Shown: positions 15,374-61,415, numbered from the stretch's first letter. The stretch: 64,000 nucleotides of DNA from Octopus sinensis (GCF_006345805.1 NC_042998.1:95294001-95358000), one strand, 5' to 3'. Program-made: numbers and translations. Notes: generated by a model from the sequence alone, not told the origin.

Positions 15374-16111
15374 CTACTGCCATATTGAACTTTTGAAAGG
15401 ATTCAGACTGGGTTGATTTGTAAATTCCACGAGATATCTGTCGTAACAACGCGCTAACATAAGCGTCAAAATCTTTAGCAAGACAAAAGCAGCACAAAGG
15501 GCGCCGATGACAATTTGGTGTTCGTAGAGCCAGTGAAACAAAGCTTTATCACAGCCTGTCGCATGAACGTTGTTGGCCTCAACAGCATTAGTACCACAGT
15601 TATATTTATAAGAGATGCAACAGGAATTTGGTACAGAATTGTTCAAATAAGGCAACCACTCAGTGTAGTTCAAAATACCGCAGCAGTGCAAGTTGTTCTG
15701 TATAGTATTCCAAGTGTAAGCCGCAGAAATGCTCTCGTTATATTTCCTCTCCGCCACTTGCATAGTATGCACCACAATTTGGCGTACATAAGACTTTAGG
15801 GTAAGACCAACGAGTCCAATTAAAATTTCAGCAATAATAAGAATGACAAGAACGCAAGAATATACTGATAATAAAATGTATCTTTCTTTTACAACGATCA
15901 CTAGGCCAAAAATCGAAGTCATACATATTAAGAGGCCGAGGGAAATTATTAGTACAGCTGGTACACTTACGCTATCACGGAAAACTTGTGCATACTCATG
16001 GAAGGATACTTGCATGAGAGATCCAACTGCAATTAGCACCAACGAAACCACTAGAAAGAATGCGTTCAATAGAATTAATAAATATTTCGCTGAACACGAT
16101 CCCATCGACAT
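15374..16111 (-). CDS. Tetraspanin A, CD63-like, single coding exon (245 aa from MSMGSC; an in-frame ATG at 16177 would add 22 aa)
   Basis: Four hydrophobic segments, TM1 LLNAFF, TM3 AEI. Large loop has LHCCG, NYTEW, VPNSCC, CG and GC, with sequons NES, NYT, NNS. The ATG at 16111 is in GCGCCATG context. The ORF is uninterrupted. Confidence 0.93.
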   Translation of the reverse strand: MSMGSCSAKYLLILLNAFFLVVSLVLIAVGSLMQVSFHEYAQVFRDSVSVPAVLIISLGLLICMTSIFGLVIVVKERYILLSVYSCVLVILIIAEILIGLVGLTLKSYVRQIVVHTMQVAERKYNESISAAYTWNTIQNNLHCCGILNYTEWLPYLNNSVPNSCCISYKYNCGTNAVEANNVHATGCDKALFHWLYEHQIVIGALCAAFVLLKILTLMLARCYDRYLVEFTNQPSLNPFKSSIWQ

Positions 16112-16781
16112 GGCGCCTAGTTTTTTTTTTTTTTGATTTCTATGAACTGTGATTTTTTTAAAAACTCTTTTAAACATATTGGTAGTAATATTTTCTGTTG
16201 TTATGTAAATGAGATATGGTTTTTAAATAACTTTTGATAAATTCATCGATGATTTAAATTATCATTCTACAGTTCTTGATGTTTGGTTCGAGCCAGCAAA
16301 GACTCGAAACGATTAGTACTATAAAATGGCAATTCGCTGTTTATTATTTGCTGAAGAGACAAAATGGCTAAGAGCATAAAGGCTCCAAATTTGTAAATTG
16401 TGTGTCGTTAGTTCGTATTCCACAATAATTGCTGTTTAAAGTTTCAAGTACTTAAAATTAATGTTACCTTTACTTTAAAACGTCAAAAATACCAATTTTG
16501 AATCCTTCAAAAAAAAAAAAAAAAAACTCAGTATAAGTCTACCTGTGATTCACTAAAAAAGGATTTTAAAGCGATGCAGAGACACAAGTGATATACATGA
16601 AAATAACCCAAACTAGCATTCAGGAGCAAATTTTCATTCCTTTCAAATTTAAAATAAAATACAGAATTAAATTAAAATAGACCTTATGTCTACGAGAAGT
16701 CATTAAAAGATCGTTTAAGGCTAAGTTGTAGAACAAAGAAGCCTTGCATTAAATACTTTGTTAATAGTGGAGGGGCAGTAC

Positions 16782-16933
16782 CCCCCCCCCCCATTTCTTT
16801 ATTACCCACTAGGGGCCACATAGAGGGGACATTACAAACATTGGGGACATGGAACATCACAATTACATAGATATGAATAAAATGAATTTTGAAAATGATA
16901 TATGAAAGCGGTGCCAACGGCCCCATCCGCTAG
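16782..16933 (-). mobile_element. Short 5'-truncated retroposon tail with a 15-bp TSD
   Basis: GTGGAGGGGCAGTAC at 16767-16781 and 16934-16948. The tail on the minus strand reads GGCCCCTAGTGGGTAATAAAGAAAT. Confidence 0.75.
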
Positions 16934-17154
16934 GTGGAGGGGCAGTACCGGAAATGCAATGTTGTGACGAACGTCATGTGAAATAATCAGAACAGAAAAC
17001 TGAACCATGTTTGCAGATCCCGCTATACAAATCTTATCAGGAATATGTTTTATTTCTTTAAAAATTTCTTTTCACTTGTTACAGTTGCTTATATAATAGT
17101 GGCAGAGATTGTGAGTTTTATACATTTTGAAAGAACAATAATAGATTAAATGAA

Positions 17155-17405
17155 GGCGGCGAGCTGGCAGAAATGTTAGCGTGCTGGGTGAAATGCTTAG
17201 CAGTATTTCGTCTGTCTTTATGCTCTGAGTTCAAATTCCGCGGAGGTCGATTTTGCCTTTCATCTTTTCGGGGTCGATTAAATAAGTACCAGTTACGCAC
17301 TGGGGCCGATGTAATCGACTTAATCCCTTTGGCTGTCCTTGTTTGTCCCCTCTATGTTTAGACCCCTGTGGGCAATAAAGAAATTAATAATAGACTAAGT
17401 GATGG
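17155..17405 (+). mobile_element. Family II SINE, full length
   Basis: Head GGCGGCGAGCTGGCAGAA, B-box GAGTTCAAATTCC, tail GACCCCTGTGGGCAATAAAGAAAT. Confidence 0.85.
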
Positions 17406-18049
17406 GAAACAGCATTGAACCAGAACTGAAACCGAATCATTTTCTCTAATCGCCCCAGTTAAGTCTTACTGTCATTACAATCATCATAAAAAATGTCAAG
17501 TTTCCAAACTAGCAAGAACCATACAAGAACCATATAAGCAACTGTAACAAGTGAAAAGAATTTTTTTAAGAAATAAAACATATTCCTGATAAGGGAAATA
17601 TATTCTTGGCAAGCGAAGCCTCAAAGTCAGTTCCAATTCTCAGCTTAATCTTACTTATGTTATTAATGGTTTCAAATTTTGGCTCAACGAAAGAGAAGTC
17701 CATTGTATCGATTCCAGGACTTGACCGGTACATACTTTATCAACCCCCAAAAGAATGAAAATCAAAGTCGATCCCGGAGAGATTTGAACTCAGAACAGAC
17801 GAAATACCATTAAGCATTTTCTCTGGCATGCTAACGATTCGGCCAGATCTCCGCTTTTACTGTAATTTATCTGTAATTTCTTTGCTGACCTTTCTGACGA
17901 CTGGAATTCTATACTCCAGATTAAGATAATATAGTATTTTACATTCCACAAACCTTTTTTATCTTCATAAATGATTTCGTGGGTGAAATGTAAATACCAG
18001 GTTGGTGATTGATGTGAATAAGACCACCATAACCAATAATATGAAAGGG

Positions 18050-20350
18050 ATTCAGGGGAACAAGTATACTGCAGATTAACAAGGATCTTAGGTTCTCGGA
18101 TCTTAGGTAGAGGGGGGTCTGTACAAAAAATATATTGCAGTTTTCACCTAAAGCCGGTACTACCAGTAAGAAGCCTCCAACTTGTTCTGGGAGGTCTGGG
18201 GTGGAAGCACAAACAATGCGGGTTCCGGGATCCTGAAGTAGGTCCTAGAGGCTTGGAAATTAGAATGTCACGCAAGCCCTCACGTGCAAAGAGCAAGAAG
18301 TAGTGGAGGAGGCCAAATGCTACGGGCTAGATATAGTCAGTGTCTGCTCTACAAGGTTCTCTATCTCTAGTGCCGTAGATCTGGATGGAGGGTGGAAACT
18401 TTGCTATTCAGATGTTGTACCAGCCATGTCTGTATAAGCAGGAGTGAGGATATTCCCCAGCAACGGGCTGTAAGATTCTGTGATAGAATGGATCCCACTA
18501 GGTTAGGAGGGTTTGCCTCCTGAAGCTTAGGTTTAATGATGGCCCGCAGTTGCTGTTGCAAATATATACTCCAAACAGCGAGGTTAAATGCAAATCCCTT
18601 CTTGACGAGGTCACTGCAGCTTTAGATGTTGTTAAGACCGAGTCATTTGTTTAACGAGATTTCAATGGATATGTTAGCACCGATCACCAGATGTGAAAAG
18701 GGGTGACTGGGAGGAATAGCGACCCTGAACTCAATGCAAATGGAGACGCCTTATCAGACTTCTGTGCTGGAAATGGGCTCTCCAGTATGAACGCATTCTT
18801 CCGACACAGTGATGTCCATAAGTACACCGAGTATAGGGGTACTTTGAGACAGAGGTCTCTAATAGATTTTGTTATCGTCTCTGATTCTATGCTAAACGTT
18901 CGTCTCTAGAAGGGTGGAGCTATCAACTGATCACCACCCAACTGTCCGCAGCCTGAGATTATCTACAGCAGGGAGAATTCGCAAAACTGCTAAGTCCAGT
19001 GTGACTAGCTGGATAAAGTGGGAAGCCCTGGAGGATGATGAGATTAGAAGCGAATATGCTGACACTATTGCATCCATATTCAGAGATCTTTCTAAACAAA
19101 CTGAGAATGCCGAAACGGAGTGTAGACTGTTTTGTTCAGCAGTTTCCTCTTCAGCTGTAAAATGCTGCGGACGAAAGTGGTTCGGTGTGGCTCCAGGTGA
19201 CAAAAGAACACCCTCGTTTAACTACGGAGTTAAAAGTGCCCTCCAGGAAAAAAAGAAGGCTTACAAAGCTTGGATTGGAAATAAGTCTCTCTTTTTGCGC
19301 AGGCGGCACACTGAAGCATGAAAAGTTGAAGCAGGGACAGTAAAAATTTCCAAGGCTAAGTCATAGTAGGACTTTAGGAAGCTGGACTTCGTAAAAATAA
19401 GCCCTCTCCCACACCTGCTATTAAGAAACTTGGCTGGGGTCTCTCTACGGAGAAGAGCATCCTTAGGAGGTGGAGAAGGTACTTTGCTCATCCCCTAAAT
19501 TCGGTCACAATAAAAATATTCTGGTGGACACGAGGTACATCTAGGGGTAAAGTCGAACCTCCAGAGAGGCTGAAGTCAGAGAGGTGATTAAAGAGTTCAA
19601 ATGTAGAAAGACCATTGCAGAGGATGAAATTCGGCCTAAGATGTTAAAAAATTGAATAGAGAAGGCTGACGCTGGATGACTCGTGTCTGACAAGAGTCTT
19701 GGGCCTCTGGAAAAAAATCAAAGTAATGGCAATTCGGAGTGATAATCCCAATTTTTTAAAAAAAGGAGGCAAGAAAGATTGATCTGATTATAGAAGAATC
19801 TCCTTGTTGAGCATCCCAGTAAACTCCACAAGAAGTCTGGAAAAGAGAAATAGGGATATTGTCGAGCTTGATGAAGAATAGTATGGCTTCCGTTCTGGAC
19901 ACAACACAACCAACCAGATATTCACAGTACCCCAGGTCTTTGAGAAATCGTGGGAATATTGCCAAGTGGTGTACACTTGCTTTGCACTTGACCACGAACC
20001 GTGGGTCATGTTGTGGGACGGTTTGTTGGAGTTTAAGACTAATGGGCAACTTCTGGTTGCCGTGATGTCCGTATACGAATTCCCAGGTGTCTGTAAATTT
20101 CAAAAGCTTTCAACATTAGGGTTGGACCTTGGCAAGAGTGCGTATTGTTACCTCTCCTTTTCATAATTCTTATGAACTGGACTGACATGCGCAGCCTTTG
20201 TGGAAGTGGTATCCCAATCAATGGTTGTAGGATAGGTCGACTGATATTTGCAGACGACATGGTGCTACTTGGCTCATTAGAAGGTGATCTTCAGCATGCA
20301 CTGAATGAATTTGCTGCCGAATGCTGCAGGGCAGGGATGAGAATTAATAT
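18050..20350 (+). mobile_element. Decayed RTE-clade LINE (endonuclease plus RT)
   Basis: APE-type endonuclease remnants (DFNG, NANGDALSDFCAGNGL..MNAFFRH, RSLIDFVIVS, STDHH) and RT remnants (SPLLFIILMNW, LIFADDMVLL). Many stops and frameshifts. Confidence 0.85.
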
Positions 20351-22015
20351 TACGCATTTCCTTTTTTCTGAAGTTCGTTACTGATTCTCCAGCGACCAGG
20401 GAAAATCAAGAGGTCATCCACGGCCAACGAGTTCCATCAGCTGTTTATAGGGATCAAAACAGGGGTAAACGACAACTCATAATACAATAAACCAGTGATA
20501 CAATAAAATCAACTTCGAAATACAATCCCTTCTATGCAGGAATCCAAGATTTTCAGTCTAACTTGACTTCTAACAAGCAAACCACACATCCTATTTTTCT
20601 TTCAGATGCATTTATCCATCTTTAGCTATCCTGTGTACACTTTCTAGTGTAACCCTTCTGTCCAGGTTACACTAATTTCTGTAGCTTTACTCCAAAATGT
20701 AGTGCTTTCTCACCATTTATCTCTCCCATCAGCATTTCAGTAATGATGATTTTTCAATCACTCGTGCTCAAATTCTCTCTACCTATATCCCGAAATACTT
20801 TTACTGACTCTGCTATGGCCCATACCTTCTCCAATTACCATAAACTATTTAAACTAGGGACTTTCATGTAAGGACCCCTCTTGGTTTCGCATTCCTCGCA
20901 CAATTAGAATAGCAAACGATCTGGGATATGCACTAGTCTATCCCTAAACGTTTACTATTCTGAATTGTTTTTCTCCCCCCCCCCCAATCTAGTCTTTACC
21001 CCGAGATTTCTGTCTCTGCTACAATTAGATCGTCCAATTACTGATTATAGTGGCAACATACTACTTACTAACGCACAACACCCTAACAAAAGTAATGTTA
21101 TTGCACTTGAAATTAATGAAGAATTCGACTGAGTCTGGTATTTCGAATCAATTAATTCTGCTAGTTTTATATCGACAATTATCAGGAATTCCATTTGTAC
21201 CTCGCCTCATTAGAGGCCGCTGAACGTTTGACCTAAATCATACTTCTAGACGCGTCTCTTCATTTCTCTTACACAATCAAAACCCGCAACCCCACTAGTG
21301 ATTTACCACGATAAAATGGCATTTGTATTTGGCTATCACTTCGCACGAACTTGAAAATTCATGCTAAACCTTCGTTCACTCTCGCGTTACTGCTCCATAC
21401 AATAGTCCCTATGTGCGAAAGCTCCTCAAGCTACTTCAGCACAAGGTGATCCACCCCAGTAGCATACTCAAACAATGCAATTCAAAGTCAGCTCTCATTA
21501 TTCTCTATGATTCCTCATTGAAAAATAGCTGGGTTTGCGTTGAGTCAGATTTATTGAAAACTTCCTTGTCAATGTCATTCCTCAGCGGTCTTATCTTTAA
21601 GAGTTTCGTGGAAGCAACATTTTAATGCATTTGACGAGCAAAGCTTTCCACTGTGTCTGGAATGAGAATTTTTATAATTGACTTGCTCGTTGTCGTTTCA
21701 ATTCACCTTATTGATCGAGTGTTATCTATTATATTGTACTGTTGTAGCGTGTCAACGTGCCTTCTTTGATAAACATTCTGTAAACTCTGGTGCACCAAGT
21801 TACGAAAATGTTTCTCATACTCTTTTTTTTCTGTACATTAACCATCTGCTTATAATCATAATACACTGCTATAATTATAAAACCAATCACTCCTAAACCT
21901 TAACGTATGCATCATTCACATCAAACCTTATTTAGACTAAAATTTCTTATCACCAGTATGAGATAAATGTTATTTGTCTAGAAACTGCAGCTGCTGCTTA
22001 TAGTTTCTTATAGAG

Positions 22016-22246
22016 CAGCGGTTCTTAACCTATGGGTCGTTTGGGGTTTCTCGGATTGTGTAGGGGCGGGGTCACGGAGGGTTCGGAAGAACGTAATTTA
22101 TTTCATGTATGTGAAGTATTGCATTGCAGTCTCTCTCCTGTGACTCACATAGCGCCTTGCGTTCCAGAGCAATTACAAGATTTATTATAGGTGTCACACT
22201 GGAGAGTCTCAGGGAGTAAGACGATGAAAAAGGTTGAGAACCACAG
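22016..22246. mobile_element. hAT (Charlie-type) MITE
   Basis: CAGCGGTTCTTAACCT ... AGGTTGAGAACCACAG. Related ends occur at 2849, about 4745, 39188-39203 and 63060-63073. Confidence 0.6.
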
Positions 22247-23239
22247 AGTAAGAGAGAGAGAGAATATTTTAAAGGAGAGAACCGCTTTATGGTTTGTTTT
22301 ATAACCCTTATGTCGAGATCATTTTTCAAATATTTTCAATATTTCAGGTTTATAAATTTTACCGTTCTTTAAAGACTTTTACTGCAATTAAAGAAATATT
22401 TCAGTTGAACATTTGCTTTTACATACTAATGATGTTTTTTTGTTTTTTTTTACAGATTTGCATGTATGCTGCTTAATATCTGTCCCTACAGTTAAATTGT
22501 CTTAAGGAAATATTAATATTTAAAAAAATAATCTCTTAAAAATTAAATTAGCTGAGGGAAATCAATGACTATTTCCTTCCCCACCTCATTTCTCTGTGCC
22601 AAAAGTGCTTCACAGATGTATAATTTCTTCGAATCAACGTAGTAAGTTCTGAACTGAAGCGGTAACTCTTGAGTTCAGTGCATGCAATGATCTTTTTATT
22701 ATCAGTGACCATCCACCGAGTTGTGCTCAACTAATTATATTCTTCATAAAACGTTATATTCTTCATAAAACGTTCTTGTTTAATCTATTCATTTGTCAAC
22801 CAGTTCATTATACGACCAAACATTCACGATTTTCTCGTCCACTATTAACTGTAACAGCCCGAACTGAACACCAAAATTTTGTCATTACTGTTAAACAAAT
22901 TAAGCTATAAGCACTAGATCTCGTTTTAGACTATTTGATGTTACCAATTTGTTGTGTGAATTAAGTATGAAATTGCATGCGTGCACGAGATTAAAATCGA
23001 TTAAAACAGTTTTGTTATATTCCCAACTTAATGTTTTGAGTTGACCAAACTATAAAAGTTACTCATGATATAACCGAAAAGTGATGGGAAACAAATTTGT
23101 GAGTTTGTAATCAAAATCCAGATTATAAAAGGCTAAGTGGAACCTGAATACATTTCTTCTACAAGCACTAATAAAAAAAATGGAAGGTAGGAGACGATGA
23201 AAGTGATTTTAAGTTAACTTTCAGCTCAAGTTTGAACCA

Positions 23240-23990
23240 AATTCACGCTAAATAAGTCAAACATTTCAATTTTGTTATTAAGCTTATCTTCAGAGAAATT
23301 TTTAAAATCCAGTCTGGTACTATGCCTACTGTTAACGAAATCTGATGGTTGGGGACCAAAACAGAGTTCATGAATATAGAGATATTTACGTAGCTAAAAA
23401 AGGAATCCTGATAATACGAACTCACCCCCAATGTTTGCAAACTAATTCAGTTCCATTTGGTAAAAAGTATTTCAAATAAATGGAAACCAGTTTTTTCGAA
23501 GATTGTTTAGAAAAAAATGGTTTTAAAAATTTGCCATTTCAGAATATCAAGAAACATAATGAAAAGAATTAAGACTATTCTAACGAAATTAAACTCCTGT
23601 AAAACGTATTTTAAAATAGTAAACCGACACATACAAACACAAATTTACTGCCCACTCACTGAATGTCGAAGCTATATAGTAGAATGCCTTTTGATTAGAT
23701 CTGGCAATAGAAATTTTTACCGATAATCTGCAGATATCCAGAAACCAAATGTGTTTGTGTGTAGAAAGTTTCATTTGATCAAGTGCAAGTTTCCGAAATA
23801 AAATGTCAAATGGGAGTGGCAAAGAATGTTAAGTTTGCGTTTCAGATTTATATGAATCTGTTCAGAAAATGCAGGATATCCTTATACATACATTTTGATA
23901 AAGATTTTTTTTTTGTACATACGGTTTTATTTCTGATATCTCAAACGAATCACTGCTTAAATATCTTCGCAATCGTCCTATATGTAAATA
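23240..23990 (-). mobile_element. Probable Penelope-like relic
   Basis: Degenerate motifs QKAFYYIAS, ICVCMC and IVPDWILK resemble the linker and GIY-YIG region of Penelope-like elements. Heavily decayed. Confidence 0.35.
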
Positions 23991-24194
23991 TTGTCTGATC
24001 AAGAGGTATTTGAGCTGGTGACTTAATTTGACTCAGTTATTGTCACCGCTAACGATCAGATTCTAAATAATAAAAAGTGAGAAGCGTGACAATCAGTATT
24101 GATATGTGTCCCCCACTTACGTATATCTTTTGTTTAAACAGAACTATACTGCAGTAGACACCCTGAGAGAAAGTGCAAAATGCATTCTTGTTTA

Positions 24195-24652
24195 CCGTAA
24201 ATCCTCGAGTATAATCCGCATTTTATTCCCAAAATGTAAAGGCCAAAATCCTTAGTGCGTACTATATACGAGGTTAAAAATTAAAAATATTTTCTAAGCA
24301 ATGTCCGAGTTTCTATTTGCTGTCTGGCTATGTTTATTCAGACGCATTTTATGATGTCGGGCGCGAAAATACCTTAGGCTAAGCCTGAAAGCAATGAAGT
24401 CATAAAAGGATCATCCATAACTTGCAGTAAGCAACATTTATTAAACGTTATTACTGTTATTTATTTTCTGCAAACAAAATGCACAAAAAAGTTACGTTTG
24501 CATTGTTATACGTACAATAATAATAAAGGACGTTACTGTATACATTTTTACAAACCAAGGACGTTATATAGACCTCTTTGACTCAAGTTAGAGAAGGGGT
24601 GCGTATTATATAGAAGGTGTAGGTTGGGCGGACTATACTAGAGGATTTACGG
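24195..24652 (+). mobile_element. Tc2/pogo-like MITE with TA TSD, nested in another MITE
   Basis: TA|CCGTAAATCCTCGAGTATA ... TATACTAGAGGATTTACGG|TA. Confidence 0.88.
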
Positions 24653-24799
24653 TATATCGCTAGTGGAGGATATAGAGCCTGCTAGCGATATAAACACGAG
24701 TGCATTTTGCAGTTTCTCTCATGGTGTCTACTACAGTATAGCTTGTTCTAACAGAACATCCACGTGCAAGTGGGAATAAATATTTCCTCCATCAAGTAC

Positions 24800-25650
24800 G
24801 AGAAATACTTTGGATTCTTTAAAGATGTTCTTTGCGAGGTTCCATCTACTGCTGCAAATTGAAGACTTTCAAGTCACTTTATATGTATGGAATTCACTAA
24901 ACTAATAATCCATTTAAAGTTACTAGCTTCTTCCAGATACTTCCTTTTGCTCAATTTGCTTTTTTTATGGCAATAAGGGCGTAGATGCAATGCAACAATT
25001 ATTCCAGTTATGCTATAGATATTTTCCATATCTCGGCTACTGTTCTCATCCTGTTATCCAAACAAATCCATCTAAATCGTTAGAGAGTTTAACACGTCTA
25101 AAACTGTTGGCAAATATACCCAACAATTTATAAAAGTCTAGAAATTACATGAAACTGGTAAACTTTCGGAAGATTGTGTCATTCAGGCAAAAACCGACTC
25201 AGATGCATAGTGAAATTTGAGCTGGTACAAATCCTTTATTGAAGCCAAAATTATTACCGTTAGAAAAGTATTACGTTTCAAGTGTGCTCATGGCGGTAAA
25301 GCTAATTTTTTCGATTTTACAGACTGGAAAGTGAATAGAAATTTTACGAAATATCAAATTAGTCACGTGGAATTGAATTTAGACAGCCGAGCATGTGGGG
25401 ACTTTCCTAAGTACTAGTCGATAGCTGTCACAATAAGCATACTCAATTTGAGAGAAAAAAAAAAAAAAAATTTTCTAGCACAGTCGAGAAAGTAATCTAG
25501 TCGAGCAGGAACATTTGCCATACAAACCATTGTGGACATTAATTCATACGTTAAAGCGAATCAAAATTTTTATAAAGCGATTCACAAGATATTCATTTAT
25601 ATTTTAGGCGTGTCACTTCAACTATTAATCTTTTCCACGAAAAGCTTCAA
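24800..25650 (+). mobile_element. Probable Penelope-like relic
   Basis: NPLLKPKLLPLEKYY then FKCAHG resemble the start of a GIY-YIG domain. Many stops. Confidence 0.35.
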
Positions 25651-26999
25651 TTAACATGTATATGTAAACTTATGCAATTGTTAGAGTTAAAAATCTGAAT
25701 TACAAAAGGTATATGCATAGTTTTGCCAACAAATTTTCATAAATACTATAAAGCCAAAATTACGCCAGACGCTTCTTGAAGGAGGGGACTAAATAGTTCC
25801 TAATATTTAGCTAATCAAAGAATTTAGTCTTATACGTTCGCACAAATTCCACAATTAAGTGTTCCAAGCATGATCCTCTTACATTTGGAACTACATTTTT
25901 TTTTTCCAAGATGGTAGGGTTGCAGTTCAGTGATTTTGACTGGCTTTTTAAAGTTGAATGGCAGCATAAGAGGGGATCAGTTACGTTATTCCTCAAAGGA
26001 ATCATCGATAAGCAAAATAAGTTAGACGAACATGGATGAAATAAATTTTAAACTTAGAGTTCTTTATTAAAAGAAACTAAATACAAAATGAAAAAATTAA
26101 ATGAATTGGCAAAAGAGTAAAAATTGTAATCAACACCTTTGAGACGGAGATAATTGAAATTTGCCAACTTAAATTGGGTCCGTCGCATATCGTTTAGGCT
26201 CAGGTTAACAGACTGAACAAAGCATATAATTAGAGTATGATTAGAGACTTTTCAGCCGTGACTGTTTTAATGCTGATTTGAGAGACATTTGGTTGCTATG
26301 TTTCCGGTTCACAACGATAAATTTCAATAAATAACAAAAATAATATTTCCAGAAATGACAAGACACTTGTAAACTTTCCGTCGATTCTGAAACTCCGGCT
26401 GAGTACAACAACCAATTAAGTTTCGATTAGGTACAGATCCATTATTGAATGCAAAGAATCATGTAATGCAGTAATATAAATTACATTTAAGTTTCCAATA
26501 GCAGTGACGCTATTAGTAGTTTTTTCAATTATACCGGTTAAAGCAAATAAAAAATGAGTCACAACAGAAATCAAATTTATACGGTAAATTCAGCACGAGT
26601 ATGTATGCTCCTTCCGCCATAATAAGAACAGAAAAGACAATTTCAACGAAGATAAAGGACAGCTGGCAGATTTTTATCGTGGTTAAAGTGATCCTCGAAC
26701 AGGATGAAATAGTTGCCATTGCGGAAATAGGTTATACAAATAAATCATTGTGGGCGTTCGTCGTCACAACAGTACGATGCTTCAAGGTTCGTTCACATTT
26801 TAAAGCAAATTGAAATGTCCAAAGTGAATTCCATTGCCCAGTTTCATTCTAAGATAAATTATTCATATTAGTAAAAAGCGAAATGAAACGGCCTCACATA
26901 AACCTGTCATTTTCGTTGGAGCAGTATTTTAAAAATAGAAGCGAGTAACAAAATAAAGCAGTTATAGGAAGGAGTTGTAGGTATTTCAAATACACCACT

Positions 27000-27731: not shown

Positions 27732-27751
27732 TTTTGTTTCATTACTTATTT

Positions 27752-49750: not shown

Positions 49751-49783
<33 letters not shown>

Positions 49784-49798
49784 TCGTGTGTGTGTGTA

Positions 49799-49834
<36 letters not shown>

Positions 49835-49885
49835 CTGTGTGTGTGTGTGTGTGTACGAATGTATGTTTGTATGTATGTATATATG

Positions 49886-52718
49886 TCATTATTCAGTTTA
49901 TTTCAAGATTTCTTGTCAATAGAGAAAGAACCGGTTTCTAACCTAGATCCAAGGTTACTTCATTGGAATTTGAATATCAACAACAGGGTATTTTGTATGT
50001 ATGTATGTTTTATGTATGTATTCTCATGCACATAGTTGCATATCTAGACATGCTCATATATATAAATGATAAAGTTCTGGAGAGTTTTACAGATTTTTAC
50101 AGTTCAAGTGATGGATTGGATCTGTAGTTTTCGAATTAGCTTTCTCCTTTCTGGTTTTGAGAAGCCTAATTTCTCAAAATTGGTATTTAGGCAGTGTGTT
50201 ACATATCCCAGGACCCCAATAATTACAGGTATAAACCTGAACTTGTAATCTGGATAGAGTAACTGCAGATTTCTCAATAGTTCAAGATAGGTGTTCTATT
50301 TTTCACTAATCTTCAGCTTTATGTCAACATCCGCTGGGCAGCTAATTTCCATAACTGTACACAGTTTCTCTTTTCTATCCCAAATCATTATATCCAATCT
50401 GTTGTGCTTACATTTTATTAAGGTCTTCATTGGTACTTTTCACCAATATTCCTTTTTATTATGAGTGGCTATGGCTTTTACCATATTTCCTTGTCCCCCG
50501 GATTATCCTTCCGACGGATTTCATTATAGAGCGTCCTAGGTGAAACGTCATGTCTCATCGGTAGATAATACCGTGATGACATTTTCGGACAGCTGCTTAT
50601 GATGTGGGTGATATCTTCAGTGTGAACTCCACAAAGTCGTCATCTTTATCCCTTTTGTGCATCAGTTACTTGGTTGATGTTTCCTGTTCATGGATCACAA
50701 ACGCATACCCTTCAAAGTAGGAGGTAGTAATCCGGCTACTGGTCCATGATAAACTGCTTTGATAATCGATGTTACTATCATCACGGAGTTTTCTAGCAAC
50801 ATGTCTATGCATAGTCTTCTGCTCATACAGGCTCATCCTTTCATCTGAGTGTACGTTGCAGTAGAGTCCTGCGACTTCTTTGAGCATGTATTCTAGGTTA
50901 TCAGAAAAAGAGTGTTGCTCGCTGCCTTCCAAGTCTTATGATGTTATCAGCCTCATGTATGCAAACTTGATCAAGGGATGGACTTCGATACTTGGTAGTT
51001 AAAAGATGTTGCCGAAGGAATATGATGCGACAGTCAAATGCATTTTAGATCGATGTTAAGTCTCTGCCACCTGGTTTTCGTTTTAGATAGGGGCGATCTA
51101 CATCCCTGTTTATGTAGAAATTATGTGTTTGTTAGAATTTTTCGTGTTTTCGCATCAATGTCTTGGATCTCATCAAGCGTCCAATCAAGGAGCCCAAATG
51201 TTGGTATGAGTACTGGCAGTGCAAACACATTGTGGGCTGCTGTTTTATTTAATGCAGAGACTTCTGAGGTTCAAATTTTCTTTATTCGGCTGTAATATTC
51301 TTTAGTGACACGTGTTTTGTTACAGGTGTCACTGTAAGATATATTTTCATCCACCCTTAGATACATGTAACATTCCTCGTCGGATATAGGGGAAACAGTC
51401 AAGTCATTGATGGAGATGTTACTAGTCTGGTTTACAGTTTTCCCCCTTTTCACAACCATATAATAACATTTATCCTGACCAAACTCCAATCCTACATCCT
51501 TTGAGAATGTTGTAACTAGGTCAAGGTTCTTTTTCATCTCATGCATATTGTCTGCATAAAGTTTTAAGTTATCCACAAAGAAACAGTGCGTAATTTTGGT
51601 ATTTCTGTTTCCTTGTGAACCAGTGAGATATCCTTCAGACTTCCTTAACATGAATGACAAGGGGTTTACAGAAAGTATAAACAACACCACGGAAAGCCTG
51701 TCTCTTTGGAATATGTCTTTGCGATACTGTATTCTATCGGTGATAATACATTCACTCTTTGTGTTTAATTTCAAGATGGTAGCCCACGATGAAGTGAAGT
51801 CAGCTATGGCTTTGACTATTCTCACTGGAACTTTAACAAGTTGAAGGGCTTCTAGCAACCATGAGTGGGGAACAGAGTCAAAGGCTTTCTTGTAGTCTAG
51901 CCACATTGAAACTAGGTTCCTCCTATGTTCTCGCACATCTGACATCACAGTTTTGTTGATTAACATTTGCTCAGCACATCCCCAAACTCCCTTCTTTCCA
52001 GCTGCTTGTCCTACTGTGATAATGTTACTGGTTTCACAATGGTCCTGGAGGAAGATGTTTAAACATGCTGTATATATTTTATACATTAAGTTCTGGCATG
52101 CAATTGGCCGGTAGTTCTTTGCCCTGTGGGTGGTTCTGCATTTGGGGATCAATTTTGTCTCTGCCAAAGCTAACCAGTGTGGTATGCTACTGTTCCCACT
52201 GAAAGCTTGCAGGTACAGATTGATAAGATATGGTCGATAGAATGCTAACTTCTTGTACCAATATCCAACTATCAAGTCTCTTCCAGGTCCTTTTCCATTC
52301 TGGAGTTTCTAAATCACAGTTGTAAGAGTTTCACCATCAATGTTGTATGTCATGGATGTAATGCAGGAGCAATAACTTTTTCGGATTTCTTCCAACCACA
52401 GAGCATCTTGTTTAAATTCCTTCTCTTCACTCTAGATTTTCTTCCAGAAGAAGTCTATGTCTTCTCGTGAAGGAGCTTCCGTAATGTTAACTGCTCCTCC
52501 TCTCATGTTTCTGTATACTGCTGCCTGGTTGCGGTTAAATTTTTAGTTTATTATTCTTCCCTTGGTTATTCTCTTCTGATGTCGGAGTTTTTCACTGACA
52601 GCTTTTAGCTCCTGCTTGAGGGTTATCAGTTTGCAAGTAAGTGTCCTCTTTTTGCTGTCTCCAAATATCTTTTCTATTTCCTTCTTTACTTTCTGTTGGT
52701 GGGACATATAGTGATTTG
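49886..52718 (-). mobile_element. 5'-truncated R4/Dong-clade LINE (RT, zinc knuckle, restriction-like endonuclease)
   Basis: KGPGRDLIVGYWYKKL, KNYRPIACQNLMYKIYT, MWLDYKKAFDSVPH, FFVDNLKLY, RLCGVHTEDITHIISSC, HNRLDIMIWD...EISCP. The ORF ends near 50066, followed by a 3' UTR. Confidence 0.9.
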
Positions 52719-52865
52719 CATGTATGTATGCATGTATGTATGTATGAATGTATGTATGTATGTATGTATGTATGTATGTATGTATGTATGTATGCATGCA
52801 TGCATGTATGTATGTATGTATGTATGTATGTATGTATGTATGTATGTATGTATGTATGTATGTAT
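52719..52865. repeat. (TGTA)n/(TACA)n microsatellite, about 36 units
   Basis: Read directly; abuts the 5' truncation point of the R4 element. Confidence 0.95.
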
Positions 52866-53311
52866 ATGAGTGTGTGCATGTATAAACACATGCAAACATG
52901 CAGGATGTAGCCGTTTGTTATAATCATAGCTAATATTATCAAACCATTGCACTTAGCAAAATTTCCACGTAAATCATGTTCAATTCTCACCTCGTACACT
53001 CTTTTCCTCGGCCACAACAACCATCGAAGCTACAACCCACCTATAGCTAACACCAACACTACAATTATCACAGCTATTACTGCCACTGCTGCTACAACTA
53101 CCCTTCTTACTACCCACAATTACTACCCCAAGCCATTAAGTAGCAAGATCAAAGCAGCAGGTTTAATAAAAGATAAAGATATCTTTTATTAAACTTTTAA
53201 TACTTTTGATATTTATAAAAAAAAAAAAATTAATTAATTAATTTATAAAAAAAAAAAAATAATTAATTAATTAAATAATTAATAAATAAAATAATATATA
53301 AATAAAAAAAT

Positions 53312-53344
<33 letters not shown>

Positions 53345-53493
53345 TATTTGTATATATATATTTAAAATGTATAAGTTTAAATTATTTAAATATTTTTTTG
53401 ATTTTTAACTTTTATATTTTTAAATTAATTTTATGTATTGGCTTATGTTTTTCACTGTTTGATTTGCCTAATAGTGGTTTTATCTCTAATTTA

Positions 53494-53542
<49 letters not shown>

Positions 53543-53546
<4 letters not shown>

Positions 53547-53730
53547 TCTGCATAGCTGGCCAGATTCGCTATCCGGGCATTTGAGGGCATATCTGAGAGG
53601 GCCACTATAAAAAGCAGTGGTCCCAAGACAGTGCCCTGTGGAACACCACTCACTATTTGTGTGTTCATAGAGGTGGCTCCATTAACCACTACTGCCTGAC
53701 TCCTATCTTTCATGAAGTCATGTAACCACA
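53543..53730 (-). mobile_element. Inverted CR1-like RT fragment
   Basis: WLHDFMKDRSQAVVVNG...SGVPQGTVLGPLLF...YADD, ending in a (TA)n run. Confidence 0.88.
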
Positions 53731-54825
53731 ACTATATGAACACACCAATAGTGAGCGGTGTTCCACAGGGCACTGTCTTGGGACCACTGCTTTTTATAGT
53801 GACCCTCTCAGATATGCCCTCAAGTGCCCAGATAGCCAATCTGGCCGGCTATGCAGACGATACGAAAGTCTCGCAGAAAATACAGAACCCCAGCGATGTT
53901 GCACACCTGCAGCAGGAGTTGGACTCAATCTACAGATGGGCTGAGGATAATAATATGCAGTTTAATGCTGAAAAATTCCAGGCCCTGCGCTACCAGCATC
54001 CAAAACTGAATATTAAACTTACAGGATACACCGGTCCACAGGGAATTTCAATCCCAGAGCCTAAGTCTGTGAGGGACCTGGGTATCGACATGAGTGATGA
54101 TACCTCTTTCCAAGTGCACATTACCAGGATGGCGACAAAGTGCAGACGACTGGCTGGGTGGATCCTAAGAACATTCAGAACCAGAGATAAGGAAACCATG
54201 ATGGTCCTCTGGCGGACATTCGTCCTCAGCCGCCTGGATTACTGCTCACAGCTATGGTCACCCACCAGTGTAAAATTAACAGCGGACTTTGAAGCAATCC
54301 AGAGAAGATTCACAAAGAAGATCGTCTCTTTGCAACAGCTCAGCTACTGGGAAAGGTTGAAACAGCTAAGACTCTACTCCCTGGAGAGAAGACGGGAGAG
54401 GTGTGCAGTAATATATGTCCCGAAGATCCTGGAAGGAATTGTGCCAAATTTTGGCATTGTAAGCCACACCAATGCTAGAACGGGACGACACTGCATAGTG
54501 CCAAAGATCCCAGCAATGCCATCACGCTTCAGGACCAGCTTCTACAACAGCCTGGCTTTCAAGGGCCCACGGCATTTTAATATTCTCCCAAAGAGTCTGG
54601 GGAACTTGCACAAAGTAGATGTAGCGGTTTTTAAATCAAAGCTGGACATCTTCCTGTCGAGAGTCCCAGATGAACCTACCTCACGGCAAGAGGTGCAAAT
54701 GAGAGTAGCTATATCAAACTCCATTCTTCACCAAGTGCCACATATTAGACGAGGTTCATCGCAATAATAGTGTAGCACAAAACGGCGGTGCATCAGCATG
54801 GCCGCAGCTCTGAGCTGAAACTAGA
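53731..54825 (+). mobile_element. 5'-truncated CR1-like LINE, ORF open to the stop at 54767
   Basis: SGVPQGTVLGPLLF, YADDTK, RDLGI, WILRTFRTR, SRLDYCSQLWSP, RLYSLERRRER. Tail GGCGGTGCATCAGCATGGCCGCAG. Confidence 0.92.
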
Positions 54826-55422
54826 GAATATATATATAATCTGTAAATAAGAGATCGGATAGGTAGTCGAGTATTACAGTAGTTTCAAATGCACATCGGG
54901 TGCATCTTACATAACATTACGAATGTCTTGTAGCCGTCCGGTGAACCTCCTCATCAAGTATATACGACTGTTTGGTTGGAAACAGTTCCCCGTAACGGAG
55001 AATGCAAAGGATAGCCGGGGTCACCAGAAAGAATAAAAGAGTATGCGTGGAGGCAGGAATTTCTAAGAACTAATGGCGTGCCCTAATCACCAATTACCTT
55101 AGTGAGTTAGATTGAGGTGTGGCCTCATTTCCTTAACAGCATACTCAAATTATTGTAGTGACTGCAGTAGATTATAATCTTATTAACGTATATGTGGGTC
55201 AATGATGGATAACCGGGGCACTGAAAGCTGGAATGTAAGTTGCTTAGGGTAAATAAATATAAGTAATAAAAGCTAATATGGTGGTGGTGGTGGTGGGGGG
55301 AAGACACGGGAAGAAGAAAGAAAGAGAAAGAGAAAACGAAAAAGGATAAAGAATAAGAACAAAGTAAGGTGACCGTAGTCGGTTATTTGTACATATAGAC
55401 ACATAAATGCACTTGTGAGATA

Positions 55423-55479
<57 letters not shown>

Positions 55480-55621
55480 ACACCTGTATATACATCCATA
55501 TAAACATATGACTTACCAGCATATCCAATAATACCTACTCTTATACAAATGACACCGTTCTTCATTCCTCCCTATCAAATCTTTACCGTGCATTATCTAT
55601 TTCCGATCTAGATACCACATA

Positions 55622-56040
55622 CCTATTTCTTTATTACCCACAAGGGGCTAAACATAGAGGAGACAAACAAGGACAGACATAAGTATTAAGTCGATTACAT
55701 CGACCCCAGTGCGTAACTGGTACTTAATTTATCGACCCCGAAAGGATGAAAGGCAAAGTCAACCTCGGCGGAATTTGAACTCACAACGTTGCGACAGACG
55801 AAATACCTATTTCTTTATTACCCACAAGGGGCTAAACACAGAGGGGACAAACAAGGACAGACATAGGTATTAAGTCGATTACATCGACCCCAGTGCGTAA
55901 CTGGTACTTAATTTATCGACCCCGAAAGGATGAAAGGCAAGGTCGACCTCGGCGGAATTTGAACTCACAACGTAACGCAGACGAAATACCGCTAAGCATT
56001 TCGCCCGGCGTGCTAGCGTTTCTGCCAGCTCGCCGCCTTC
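55622..56040 (-). mobile_element. Tandem or self-inserted family II SINE (about 184-bp unit repeated)
   Basis: CCTATTTCTTTATTACCCACAAGGGGCTAAAC starts at 55622 and 55806; only the right-hand copy keeps the head. Confidence 0.88.
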
Positions 56041-56499
56041 TAGACACCACATACCAAATGAACATTCACTCCAGGGACAGAGACCTCGAAGATATCCTCC
56101 AGCATGATTATGCTAATCTTGTATCTTTCAGTAGCAAGGGAACACAAACATAAGTCATATCATCGTCCCTCACCACCATAATCATAAACGACATTCGCCT
56201 ACGAGACCACAAAATTGTTCCAGTCATTGGTCTTGCTATTATTGAGGAGCTATCCTTGCAAAAGCATCTTAATATTGGTTTTAAATTTTGGCACAAGCCT
56301 AGCAATTTCGGAGGGGGGAGTAAGTCGATTACGTCGACCTCAGTATTCAACTGGTACTTATTTTATCAACTCCTAAAGGATGAAAAGCAAAATCGACCTC
56401 AGCGAGAGTAATTTTGAGGTTGTTTGGAACCTGATTTGGGTTTGTGTTACTAAGGAGATCTGTTTGGTTTTATACTTTTGCTTTGGATGTGATAATTTT

Positions 56500-56885
56500 A
56501 AAGGCGCAGGTGAGACTGTGTAGTAAGAAGTTTGCTTCCCAACCACATGGTTCCGGGTTCAAATCCACTGCACAGCATTTTGGACCAGGGGCTTATTTTA
56601 TAGTCTCGGACTTATCAAAGCCCTGTGAGTGGATTTGATAGACGGAAACTGAAAGAGGCCCGTCATATGTATATGCGTGCGTGTGTGTGTGCGAGTGTGT
56701 GTGTGACCTTGTTCATGCACTGAGCGTCACCACCGCTTGACAATCAGTGTTGGTTTGTTTACATGTCCTAACTTAGTGGTTCAGCAATAGAGACCGGCAG
56801 AATAAGTACCAAACTGTATAAAGACTAGACCCTTCAAGGAAGTGCCCCAGCACGGCCGCATTCCAATGAGTGAAACAAGTAAAAG
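56500..56885 (+). mobile_element. Family I SINE
   Basis: Head with GGGTTCAAATCC, GTGAGTGGATTTG..AGACGGAAACTGAAAG core, and tail GTGCCCCAGCACGGCCGCA...TGAAACAAG. Confidence 0.8.
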
Positions 56886-58317
56886 ATAAAAAATATTGTT
56901 TACTTTCTTTTTCCCATCCTCTCTCTCATTCTTTCTCTCGGTGTAAGTTTCTCTCTCTCTCTCTCTCTATTTGTCTCTCTCCCCCACTCACCTCTCTCTC
57001 TCTCTCTCTTGTCTCTGTCTGTCATTCTATGTCTCTCTCTCTCTCTCTCTCTCTCTTCTACATGCATTTATATGTTATAATTCCATTTTGACGCAGATGC
57101 AATAAAACTGTTGCGAAGTTATTTTTCTAGGCAACATATGACATCATTCCTTGAGGCATCTATAACCTGGTTGATAGAGCTTTCGACATTTTGGAGCAAG
57201 TGATTTGATATGCAGCAGTTACAACATAGAAAAGCCATTCCAAACACGTGAAAATACTCAAAACTGTTCTAATGCAGTTCTACTGTAACTTTCAGATTAA
57301 GTTACTTCCTAGACAAATACAATTCTGAAATTTCGAGAACGTCATTTAGATTTCAAAATCACATTTAAAATTTTTTTATTTATTTATCTATATATTTCTA
57401 TACTTTTCATTCTTTAGCTGCTTTGTTCCGGGTACGAACTTATATTTCTCCATTATTTAAGAACGTGGAAAACAGCGAGGCAGAATCGTTAGCACGCCGG
57501 GTAACATGCTTATCGGCGTTTCATCCGTCTTTACGTTCTGAGTTCAAATTCCGCTGAGGTCGACTTTCCTTTTCATCCCTTCGGGGTCGATAAATTAAAT
57601 ACCATTTGAGTACTGGGATCGATGCAATCGACTTACTCTCTCCCCCGAACTTGCTGGACTGGTCCCAAAAATTGAAACCATTATTTAAGAGCGTGGGAAA
57701 ATACATATTTGATCATCAAGTCCCTTATTTTCTGAATTCAATTCTACAGAGGACAACTTTGCTTTTCATTCTTTTAGAATTGATGAATTAGAGTACGAGT
57801 GAAGTACTGGAGTCAATAGTATTGATGAACGCCTTACCCCCAAAATTGTTCGCTTGGTACCTAAATCAGAAGCCATTATTTAATTCTTTTGTGCGGGGTA
57901 GGTGCATAAACCGGCACCTTTTGTCCAAACATTCCTTCTTAGTATCTACAAATAATAGAGTGATGTTGTTGCTTATAACTCTTTGTTCAAGCGTGGCCCA
58001 TTTGCGTAAATTCTATTTTGTTAGTAAAGCTACCGTGTGTAGACAATCTGCAGAGAAGGATAGAGGTCAGTTGTTTCAGTTTATAGCCATTCGTTGTTTT
58101 TTAAAATCCATTATATTTTTATAATTAAATGTTATTAGGAATTGTATTAAAAATGTTAAAATATTTTGTCTGTTGTAGAAATATAACCAATTTATTGCAC
58201 ATAATCTTATTTTACAAAGGGGCGAGAAGCCTATGCCAACCCTAATCAATAATCCACGACTGTTGTGCAAGTGTTTGTAGATCAGTTCTGCTGGTTTGGG
58301 ATCCTCAGGAGCTGCTG

Positions 58318-58635
58318 AGGCGCGTGGTTTAGTGGTTAGAATATTCAGCTCAGGATCGTAAGGTCGTGAGTTCGATACTTGGCAGTACGTTGTGCAAAAC
58401 AGTTTATTTTACGTTGCTCCCGTCCATACAGCAGGTAAAAATGAGTTGTATCTGTAATTAAAAGGACCAGCCTTGTCACATTCTGCGTCACGCTGAATCT
58501 TCCTGAGAGCTACGTTAAGGTTACGCGTGTTTGTGGAGTGCACGGACCAGTCACTTGTACGTTAGTTTCACGAGCATGCTGTTCCGTTGATCGAATCAAA
58601 TGGAACAGTTATCGTCACAACTGACGAGTGCCAAT
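58318..58635 (+). mobile_element. tRNA-derived SINE (another family)
   Basis: GGCGCGTGGTTTAGTGGTTAG (A-box) and GTGAGTTCGATAC (B-box), followed by a non-tRNA body. Confidence 0.65.
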
Positions 58636-60689
58636 ATTAAGAAGTATCAGAAACGGTATTTGGTCATTGATTAAGCCGCGATCCTTGGACTATAAAAACG
58701 ACACAAGATCTCACTGCAGTTATTAATTGTAACAGTTTCTAACTTTGGCAAAAGAACACCATATGTAGAAGAGTGTATAGTCAATTAACTCTTTTCCAGT
58801 ATTTTACTGATATTTTACTCTAACGGATGAAAAGTAAAGCAGATATCGGTAAGATTTGAACGTAAAAAGACGTAACAAAATATTACAAAGTACTGTGTCT
58901 ACCACTTTGCTGATTGTGCTAATCAAACTTCATTGATTACCAACATGAACACTAGGTTAAAAGTTTATGGAGAAGATAATCTAATGGGATTAAATTGATT
59001 TAGTACTTAATTGGCCTTGCATTTTATTGACAGCGGAAGGATAAAAAGCAATGATTATTCAGAATGCGAAACATCGTAATTAGATATCCTTTCTACTAAA
59101 GGCACAAGGCCTGAAACTTTAGGGGAGGGGACTAGTCGATTAGACACCAGTGTTTCACTGCTACTTAATTTATCGACCCCGAAAGGATGAAAGGCGAAAT
59201 CGACCTCAGCGATGGACGAAATGCCGCTAAACATTTCACCCAGCATGCTAACGATTCTGCCAGCTCGCTGCCTAATCGTAATTAAATATCGTCATCTATT
59301 TATGTCAATAGTGTCAGGACAAAATCTTTCATGGGTGTCTTCTGCATGAAGAATATATAGTTAAGTGCAGGCCAAAACATTTAATGTAGTGAGCCAAAGA
59401 TAATTTTTAATCAAGTCATTAGGGCTGATGAACATTTCTTTTTTAAAATGAGGCGAGAGAACTCTGAAATTGAAAGTGAATTGAAATTGGATGAATATTT
59501 GCATTGGGAAGTGAGTTTCATCTTTGATAATTGTGGTGACAACTCTAGGCACGTTCAATTTAATTAGACCTCTATAGCAAAGTCAAGTCTTTCGCATAAC
59601 TCCAGACAAAACTACTTTTAGAACATAGCGTTTTTGTATGAGAATAGCCCCAAAACTAAAACGTTTTAAATATTGATTTCAAATTTTAGCACGAGGCCAG
59701 AAATTTCGGGGAAGTGGGTAAGTCGATTATATCGACCTTGTCCTCAACTGGTACTTATTTTTTATTGACCTCGAAAAGATGAAAGGCAAAGTCAACCTTA
59801 GCGGAATTTGAACTCAGAACGCAAATACGAACGAAAGACCTCTCAGCATTTTTCCCGGCGTGCTAACGATTCTGGCAAAATATTGATAGAAAAATTTCCT
59901 CATTGTGTGTTGTGGATTAATATAGTTAAGTGAGACAAAAGAGAGAATTATAAATAAATATAATGTAATCGGTACTTTATCACTTGCTTTCCCTCACAGC
60001 TCATGTCAACCCGGTGATAAAATCTAACAATATCTTTTATTCAAAAATAGTATCCACGTTCTGTATTAATTTATTATTCTTTGTTTGTTAAATCATTAGA
60101 GCATTTTCTTTTAATTGTTGTAAATACGAAACATTCTAAATAAGGTAAATGATAAACAAGAACACAATATTCTTTTCTACTCGAGGAACAAGGCTCGACA
60201 TTTTGGGGGAGGGGGCCAGTTGATTAGATCGACCCCAGTACGCAACTGGTACTTAATTTATCGACCCCGAAAGGATGAAAGGCGAAGTTGACCTCGGCGG
60301 AATTTGATCTTAGAACGTAAAGATAGACGAAATACTGCTAAGCATTTCTGCCAGCTCGCCACCTCACAAGAATACAATTTCTTCCGGTGCTGTGTGTTCT
60401 GAGTTCAAATGTTGCTGTCACACTCCCAAGGGAGAAAAAATAAGTAACAGCTTCAATATTGGAGTCGATGTAATCAACTTGCCCCCATCACCACCTTGTG
60501 TCAAAATTAGAAATCATTATCTCGTTAAAAATTCGACTGTATGGCACCAGAAACGAACCCGCGACTTTCTTACAAAAATCACATGTGTTGTTTTCTGATC
60601 ATTAGAAATGGTTGTATAAGGAAATCAATGAAGCAGAAGAATTTGCATATGAACAACGCTGTGCTTATTTATTTACCAACCAATGAATT

Positions 60690-60714
60690 GTAATCTTTTT
60701 TATCCTTGTGGCAG
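60690..60714 (+). promoter_or_regulatory. Probable 3' splice acceptor of a 5'-UTR intron of tetraspanin D
   Basis: TAATCTTTTTTATCCTTGTGGCAG|TAAGCATG: a pyrimidine tract plus CAG, 5 nt before the ATG. Confidence 0.5.
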
Positions 60715-60719
60715 TAAGC

Positions 60720-61415
60720 ATGGAATGTAGTCCTTTTTGTACGAGGGTGACTTTAATTTTGTTAAATATTCTCTTTCTTGTCGCTTCTCTTATTGTAATA
60801 GGACTCGGTGGATTCTATTACACCCAAACCTATCCTTGTTTGTTAGGAAACTATATGAAGTTGTGTACTATTTTGTTTATATCTTTAGGCTTTCTTCTGA
60901 TGCTTATGTCACTATTTGGTCTTGTTGGAGCCCTGAAGAAAAGCTATGAATACATCGCAACCTTCACTGTCTTTATCGTCCTTATAACAACTGTGGAAAT
61001 TGGCAGTTCCACTGCAACATTTTCGCTACGAAAAATAGCAAGTCATTCAGTGAGCGCGAGGATGGTTAAGACCGAACACCAATATCTCTTCAACGCAACA
61101 GTTGCAAACGAATGGGATAGTATTCAGAAAAGATTCGCTTGTTGTGGAGTTCACAAACCAAGTGAATGGTACAATGTCTTGGGTAATGGTACTGTTCCAG
61201 ATTCTTGCTGCATTCACCCAACGGAAGGCTGCGGAAATTACTCCAAAAATCAGAGCTCTATTTATGAACATGGTTGTTCGAAAAAGATACTTTCTTGGAT
61301 GCATAAACGTCAAATTTATTTTGGGACTACTTGTAATATATTTGGATTTTTACAGTTGGTTGGTGGTATATTCGCCTGTTCTCTCGCAAGCTATATTCGT
61401 GTTGGAGCTATATAA
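60720..61415 (+). CDS. Tetraspanin D, CD63-like, single coding exon (231 aa)
   Basis: TM1 LLNILF, TM2 FGLVGA, TM3 VEI, large loop with FACCG, VPDSCC, GCG and HGC, TM4 LQLVGGIFAC. The first ATG is at 60720; the track start at 60708 is a GTG. Confidence 0.94.
   Translation: MECSPFCTRVTLILLNILFLVASLIVIGLGGFYYTQTYPCLLGNYMKLCTILFISLGFLLMLMSLFGLVGALKKSYEYIATFTVFIVLITTVEIGSSTATFSLRKIASHSVSARMVKTEHQYLFNATVANEWDSIQKRFACCGVHKPSEWYNVLGNGTVPDSCCIHPTEGCGNYSKNQSSIYEHGCSKKILSWMHKRQIYFGTTCNIFGFLQLVGGIFACSLASYIRVGAI

Follow-up and report, generated by a model that had tools for sequence, protein, structure and literature searches.

A conserved array of four intronless CD63-like tetraspanin genes in Octopus sinensis and its probable origin by ancient retroposition and tandem duplication

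The 64,000-nucleotide stretch of Octopus sinensis DNA analyzed here in full (GCF_006345805.1 NC_042998.1:95294001-95358000, chromosome CM016860.1; hereafter, the window) contains four uninterrupted tetraspanin open reading frames (ORFs) of 245, 243, 240, and 231 amino acids, which we call T1, T2, T3, and T4, respectively. These genes are separated by gaps of 10.8, 13.9, and 18.3 kb and occupy 46 kb in total, with T4 on the plus strand, T3, T2, and T1 on the minus strand, and T4 head-to-head with T3 (Table 1). A first-pass annotation of this DNA had described four complete ORFs of 231-245 amino acids lying 11-18 kb apart, and the lengths and gaps measured here agree with that description. The window contains nine ORFs of at least 180 amino acids, four of which are the full-length tetraspanins (Pfam PF00335); by chance, 0.014 uninterrupted frames of 231 or more codons would be expected per window. 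When the window was searched in six frames by tblastn and with four profile hidden Markov models, neither a fifth tetraspanin copy nor a decayed or pseudogene fragment was found.

Table 1. Positions of the tetraspanin genes and other features in the window, counted from its first nucleotide
Feature	Position	Strand	Remarks
T1 coding sequence	15374..16111	-	245 aa, start MSMGSC; a 267-aa open frame reaches upstream to 16177
T2 coding sequence	27000..27731	-	243 aa, first ATG (MATIPA); ORF 27000-27767
T3 coding sequence	41688..42410	-	240 aa, single exon
T4 coding sequence	60720..61415	+	231 aa, start MECSPF; ORF 60708-61415
Intergenic spacers of the array	16178..60719	.	repeat-rich, carry partial reverse-transcriptase ORFs
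Partial reverse-transcriptase ORF	51271-52275	-	RVT_1 match to part of the domain only
Partial reverse-transcriptase ORF	53712-54767	+	RVT_1 match to part of the domain only
ORF resembling the C-terminal part of LINE (long interspersed element) ORF2	11679-12239	+	no Pfam match

All four proteins match Pfam PF00335 from profile position 2 to positions 218-223 of 225, with scores of 132.5, 59.5, 87.1, and 129.6 bits for T1 to T4 (E-values of 2e-38, 5e-16, 2e-24, and 2e-37, respectively; curated cut-off, 32.1 bits), and each has four hydropathy peaks corresponding to transmembrane (TM) helices. The large loop of each protein contains six cysteines with the spacing seen in the canonical CD63-like gene described below, and the CCG, P-[DN]-SCC, C, and GC motifs of this loop are invariant across the four. 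Pairwise identity among the proteins is 23-33%, with T2 and T3 the closest pair (33%), which bears out the high divergence ascribed to them at the outset. The AlphaFold model of T3, which is the most divergent of the four, has a mean predicted local distance difference test score (pLDDT) of 90.9 and consists of four long helices and a helical loop domain; each of its top 15 fold matches in the PDB is a tetraspanin, and the large loop can be superposed on that of CD63 with a root-mean-square deviation of 1.5 A. In a search with a profile of the four genes, the closest solved structures by sequence were TSPAN7 (3e-30), TSPAN15, and the CD63 loop (2e-16). With TSPAN7 and the CD63 loop as closest solved relatives, the CD63-like identity proposed in the first-pass annotation stands, and "CD63-like" is a fair class label for T1-T4.

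The GCCG motif after TM2, a usual palmitoylation site, and the CC motif after TM4 are typical of palmitoylated tetraspanins rather than strictly defining. In T1-T4, the post-TM2 GCCG dicysteine is replaced and the CC after TM4 is lost or reduced; some N-terminal and TM4-proximal cysteines are retained. The lost "FGCCGA" site corresponds to residues 67-74 of T1, 76-83 of T2, 75-82 of T3, and 65-72 of T4, and T1 and T4 have a common replacement, "FGLV," at this position. At its C terminus, T2 carries the YxxPhi motif YNKL, present as YDKL in Octopus bimaculoides and as YDNL in Argonauta, and T4 ends in YIRV, a weak YxxPhi that is not kept in Argonauta; no C-terminal YxxPhi is present in T1 or T3.

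Tetraspanins are a classic example of a family whose intron positions are conserved. The premise of the first-pass annotation, that animal tetraspanin genes normally contain several conserved introns, holds for the nearest relatives of the array, which have six coding introns at common positions. The closest non-cephalopod match is a chiton protein (XP_064597847.1) representing the canonical CD63-like gene. In comparisons that take in molluscs, annelids, and a barnacle, this gene shows 52-60% conservation; it spans 17.7 kb in the chiton, 10.9 kb in the bivalve Solemya, and 33.8 kb in Octopus vulgaris (copy P0295, "CD63 antigen-like"). By exon mapping, this gene has seven coding exons and six introns, with junctions near amino acids 22, 85, 110, 141, 183, and 211, and the six positions are common to O. 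vulgaris, chiton, and Solemya. All six junctions map within the continuous ORFs of T1-T4, in which 0 of 6 introns are present; with continuous coding sequences and annotated models that are single-exon, the four genes lack introns as had been claimed. The canonical junctions fit ancestral introns 1-6 of Garcia-Espana et al. 2009 (PMC2650405). The same work documents intron loss within the tetraspanin family and the absence of introns from TSPAN10, so that an intronless tetraspanin is unusual yet precedented (PMC2650405).

The octopus copy of the canonical gene, P0295, is 54% identical to the chiton gene and 24-32% identical to T1-T4. Because octopus has this separate canonical gene, T1-T4 are not its one-to-one orthologues. 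In O. vulgaris the canonical gene maps to a chromosome of 47 Mb, and in O. sinensis the array maps to one of 208 Mb, a comparison made between sister species rather than within one assembly.

By analysis of the genome of Argonauta hians (BAAFZT010000001.1), we identified orthologues of all four genes, each an intact single ORF, in an order and orientation identical to those of the window, namely T4 on the plus strand followed by T3, T2, and T1 on the opposite strand. The array is 18.9 kb long in Argonauta (gaps of 8.0, 3.4, and 4.6 kb) versus 46 kb in the window. The orthologous proteins are 59-62% identical for T1, 52% for T2 (GAB1597358.1), 46% for T3 (GAB1597359.1), and 75% for T4, whose Argonauta orthologue is an ORF of 231 amino acids that is likewise head-to-head with its neighbor. 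Within the array, the Octopus and Argonauta sequences align in the coding sequences only, and a few short repeat matches occur elsewhere in the window. Two of the Argonauta gene calls differ from the open frames: the annotated T4 orthologue, GAB1597360.1 (186 amino acids), begins at an internal Met of the 231-amino acid frame (L009 9866-10561), and the intact T1 orthologue (L008 15341-16081) is missing from the called genes of the locus.

In O. bimaculoides, T1 and T2 have single-exon orthologues that are 93% (XP_052821542.1) and 90% (XP_014772953.1) identical, respectively, and a T4 orthologue from another octopod was found in Logan contigs. The segment carrying T2 (window ~23447 to 28902-33825) is inverted in O. 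bimaculoides (L001/L002), where T2 and T1 are head-to-head; because Argonauta has the arrangement seen in the window, the change, be it an inversion or a misassembly, lies on the O. bimaculoides side. These results show that the array is old, is fixed at four genes, and is common to Octopus and Argonauta. The suggestion that the array might extend beyond the window found no backing, as the flanks of T1 in the window and of T4 in Argonauta carry no further tetraspanin: none was found in the 15 kb of the window past T1, in the Argonauta sequence up to 10 kb past T4, or within 10 kb around T1 in O. bimaculoides. Because the flanking DNA checked holds no more tetraspanins, the array looks like a closed set of four.

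Selection was assessed from the ratio of nonsynonymous to synonymous divergence (dN/dS) by the method of Nei and Gojobori, with neutrality tested by a binomial p value. Against O. bimaculoides, dN/dS was 0.29 for T1 (dS 0.116, p = 5e-4) and 0.40 for T2 (dS 0.121, p = 5e-3); against the other octopod represented in Logan contigs, it was 0.12 for T4 (dS 0.27, p = 8e-12); and against Argonauta, it was 0.14-0.25 for T1-T3, with dS saturated (above 1.4). Intergenic identity between the window and O. bimaculoides is 88-91%, equal to a dS of ∼0.12. Because dS equals this intergenic divergence, the coding sequences are more conserved than the neutral flanks. Domain-wise counts of amino acid replacements revealed a fairly even spread, without an overall excess in the variable region of the large loop; in T4 alone, TM2-TM4 are almost frozen while the loop diverges. 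Based on these data, T1-T4 are under purifying selection, which is rather relaxed for T1-T3, and the constraint postulated in the first-pass annotation is thus borne out by dN/dS values of 0.12-0.40 (p = 5e-3 to 8e-12).

An exhaustive profile search returned 5915 tetraspanins, and a neighbor-joining bootstrap tree, a method that is too weak at the 25-30% identity prevailing here to place T4, was built from the best profile matches. T2 and T3 are sisters in this tree (100% bootstrap), and T1 groups with ∼20 unnamed ORFs and two proteins of the cuttlefish Acanthosepion pharaonis (59% bootstrap). One of the cuttlefish genes (CAE1293097.1), 37% identical to T1 at the protein level, is a single 702-bp exon, and T2 and T3 score higher on a profile of the T1 clade than on a profile of the canonical gene; for T4, the profile scores are ambiguous. 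The GCCG motif is lost in 32 of 32 clade members, T4 included, whereas the CC is kept in 56 of the 73 other top matches; this rare shared change backs the clade without recourse to the tree. Because the cuttlefish gene of the same clade is single-exon, the intronless family is older than octopods, and by sequence comparison it is probably coleoid-wide. The first-pass annotation had proposed a lineage-specific, probably cephalopod, family; its known members are indeed restricted to cephalopods, and the single-exon cuttlefish gene means that the family is not confined to octopuses.

The ENA assembly ERZ21867824 contains at least 11 uninterrupted ORFs of the T1-like clade, three of them on one 233-kb contig and two on another, which points to a more extensive tandem expansion in a different genome, probably that of a cephalopod. 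This assembly was deposited as a metagenome, and its contigs ctg80297l and ctg120360l (L012 and L016) have no nucleotide similarity to the window. The animal CD63-like matches also included WP_171492036.1 (P0042), named "tetraspanin family protein [Acinetobacter baumannii]," which almost certainly reflects contamination of a bacterial assembly with animal DNA.

Taken together, these findings make it likely that T1-T4 are functional paralogous six-cysteine CD63-like tetraspanin genes that arose from an ancient retrocopy followed by tandem duplication. According to this model, the spliced mRNA of a six-intron CD63-like gene would have been reverse-transcribed and inserted in the coleoid ancestor, giving an intronless gene. 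This founder would then have duplicated in tandem, with the T2/T3 pair as the product of the last duplication, and all duplications would predate the split between Octopus and Argonauta, which is of the order of 100 million years old or more. The copies would have diverged fast under moderate constraint, and later transposon insertions would have widened the spacers in Octopus. We infer the retroposition and its timing from this pattern. Poly(A) remnants and target-site duplications are expected to have been erased because the event is old, as dS against Argonauta is saturated.

Several observations weigh against this model. No T3 or T4 orthologue was found among the annotated proteins of O. 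bimaculoides. The clade holding all four genes has a bootstrap value of 24% and includes a mosquito sequence, and GCCG is also absent from some unrelated tetraspanins. T4 scores best on a generic CD63-like profile (185 bits versus 174 bits on the T1-clade profile) and is 32% identical to the canonical octopus gene versus 30% to T1. The dN/dS values of 0.3-0.4 for T1 and T2 are rather relaxed. The orthologue-bearing Logan contigs look genomic rather than transcript-derived, ending at homopolymers or repeats; the T4-like (L003-L007) and Sepia (L011) contigs are colinear with genomic DNA and show no splicing or poly(A) tails. The intronless status refers to the coding sequence, and the untranslated regions of T1-T4 may carry introns.

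Stepwise intron loss at the original locus, for example through genomic deletion or through recombination with partial cDNAs, followed by ordinary tandem expansion, would leave the identical end state, and both intron loss and the intronless TSPAN10 are documented in the family (PMC2650405). We nonetheless regard this course of events as unlikely, as every member examined (four in Octopus, four in Argonauta, one in Sepia, and the ERZ21867824 ORFs) has 0 of 6 introns, with no intermediate, and O. vulgaris still has an intron-bearing canonical gene, located on another chromosome, as would be predicted for a parent.

It is also conceivable that T1-T4 had no single intronless ancestor and descend from separate CD63-like lineages or from independent retrocopies, or that T4 stands apart from the other three, with their adjacency being secondary. 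Pairwise identities among the four (23-33%) that are no higher than those to the canonical gene (24-32%), the low bootstrap value of the inclusive clade, the preference of T4 for the generic profile, and the position of T4 on the opposite strand would all fit such a history. Against it, it is very improbable that four intronless copies inserted independently into the same 46 kb (19 kb in Argonauta), all six introns and GCCG are lost in all four genes, FGLV is common to T1 and T4, and the arrangement is kept in Argonauta; we therefore consider separate origins a decidedly poor prospect. Monophyly of T1-T4 is plausible and moderately supported, with T4 the uncertain member, and it rests mainly on linkage, shared absence of introns, and the lost motif. 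The idea in the first-pass annotation of one retrocopied CD63-like ancestor and its tandem duplication is thus partly supported: linkage, intron absence, and motif loss agree with a single ancestor, the tree support for one is weak (24% bootstrap), and retroposition is the probable mechanism.

That the ORFs are non-functional processed pseudogenes that stayed open by luck, as their transposon-rich surroundings and the moderately high dN/dS of T1 and T2 might suggest, is effectively excluded by the expectation of 0.014 open frames of 231-245 codons per window, by the intactness of all four genes in Argonauta despite a dS above 1.4, by dN/dS values significantly below 1, and by retention of the six loop cysteines and the CCG and PxSCC motifs in all of them.

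By analogy with known tetraspanins, each of the T1-T4 proteins would be a four-pass membrane scaffold whose disulfide-locked loop and TM helices bind partners sideways, and such binding would control the clustering and trafficking of the bound proteins. T2 probably cycles through endosomes and lysosomes like CD63, because its C-terminal YxxPhi adaptor-binding signal is kept. With the post-TM2 GCCG dicysteine lost clade-wide, all members probably differ from canonical tetraspanins in their palmitoylation-dependent assembly into the tetraspanin web.

We tentatively propose that T1-T4 belong to a coleoid-specific, retrogene-derived subfamily that lacks the palmitoylation dicysteine and has diversified separately in different lineages, octopods having a fixed cluster of four genes, cuttlefish at least two genes, and ERZ21867824 at least 11 ORFs, some of them in tandem. 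If this is true, the subfamily could serve to organize membranes in tissues that only cephalopods possess. An entire intronless subfamily that has long been under selection would be a clean example of a retrogene founding a gene family, because tetraspanin intron positions are otherwise conserved. It would make a small addition to the list of cephalopod-specific gene expansions, and the shared loss of GCCG provides a concrete, testable feature that sets it apart from canonical tetraspanins. In practical terms the value is modest, as the genes are annotated already and both retrogene families and tetraspanin expansions are familiar.

The gene models themselves are public. T3 is an exact match to a gene annotated as single-exon on CM016860.1 of GCA_006345805.1, the locus fetched from that assembly is 100% identical to window positions 31688-52410, and T1 and T2 are present as NCBI/UniRef proteins on the same 208-Mb chromosome. 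RefSeq names these genes "CD63 antigen(-like)," and the RefSeq/GenBank models are single-exon; the O. bimaculoides orthologues of T1 and T2 (XP_052821542.1 and XP_014772953.1) are named "CD63 antigen" and have single-exon coding sequences on CM046602.1. We found no paper that describes the family: a literature search returned none on intronless tetraspanins in cephalopods and none citing the O. bimaculoides accessions or the ENA assembly ERZ21867824. No link to T1-T4 could be made for the squid pan-neuronal marker "tetraspanin-8" or for octopus mucus tetraspanins.

No ORF in the window exceeds 351 amino acids, and no intact autonomous-element ORF was found by ORF listing and Pfam search; apart from T1-T4, the long ORFs either translate simple repeats or encode parts of reverse transcriptases. 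The first-pass statement that the transposon ORFs are mostly broken is true in outline, given the maximum of 351 amino acids and the partial RVT_1 matches. A Pfam scan of 10 further window ORFs (at least 100 amino acids) gave nothing real, and Rfam and tRNA scans of the window gave no matches. At positions 482-2043, long ORFs on both strands translate microsatellite or low-complexity DNA of the CA/TG type (HTHTHT, CVCVCV) and are not genes. An interspersed repeat of ∼180-210 bp that resembles a short interspersed element has several copies in the window (3380-3561, 55625-55838, and 55809-55990) and is also found upstream of T1 in O. bimaculoides (L001 8484-8697).

In comparison with the canonical lophotrochozoan CD63-like gene (O. 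vulgaris P0295, chiton XP_064597847.1), T1-T4 have the same length, four TM helices, the same spacing of the six loop cysteines, and likewise an E or Q in TM3, and the C-terminal tyrosine motif YNKL of T2 stands where the canonical gene has KEYECV or KEYEVV. With its six introns, the canonical gene spans 11-34 kb and is 52-60% conserved, whereas T1-T4 have no introns, evolve fast, and are only 24-32% identical to it. It also keeps GCCG after TM2 and CC after TM4, which T1-T4 have lost or reduced. Human CD63 and TSPAN7, of the CD63L group (PMC2650405), have the six-cysteine class in common with T1-T4, and the CD63 loop superposes on that of T3, but the human genes are not orthologous to T1-T4, which lack the CD63L intron set. 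The CD63-type YxxPhi end is found, among T1-T4, only in T2 and weakly in T4.

The Drosophila Tsp42E genes form a lineage-specific tandem cluster of fast-diverging CD63-related tetraspanins, like the array described here; this cluster is an independent insect expansion with many more members, and its genes keep their introns. TSPAN10 (oculospanin) belongs to the eight-cysteine TSPAN15-like group. This intronless vertebrate tetraspanin (PMC2650405) lacks introns as T1-T4 do, but it is a single gene without a tandem array, and its origin is unrelated to that of T1-T4. Since TSPAN10 has no introns, intronless members do arise in the tetraspanin family.

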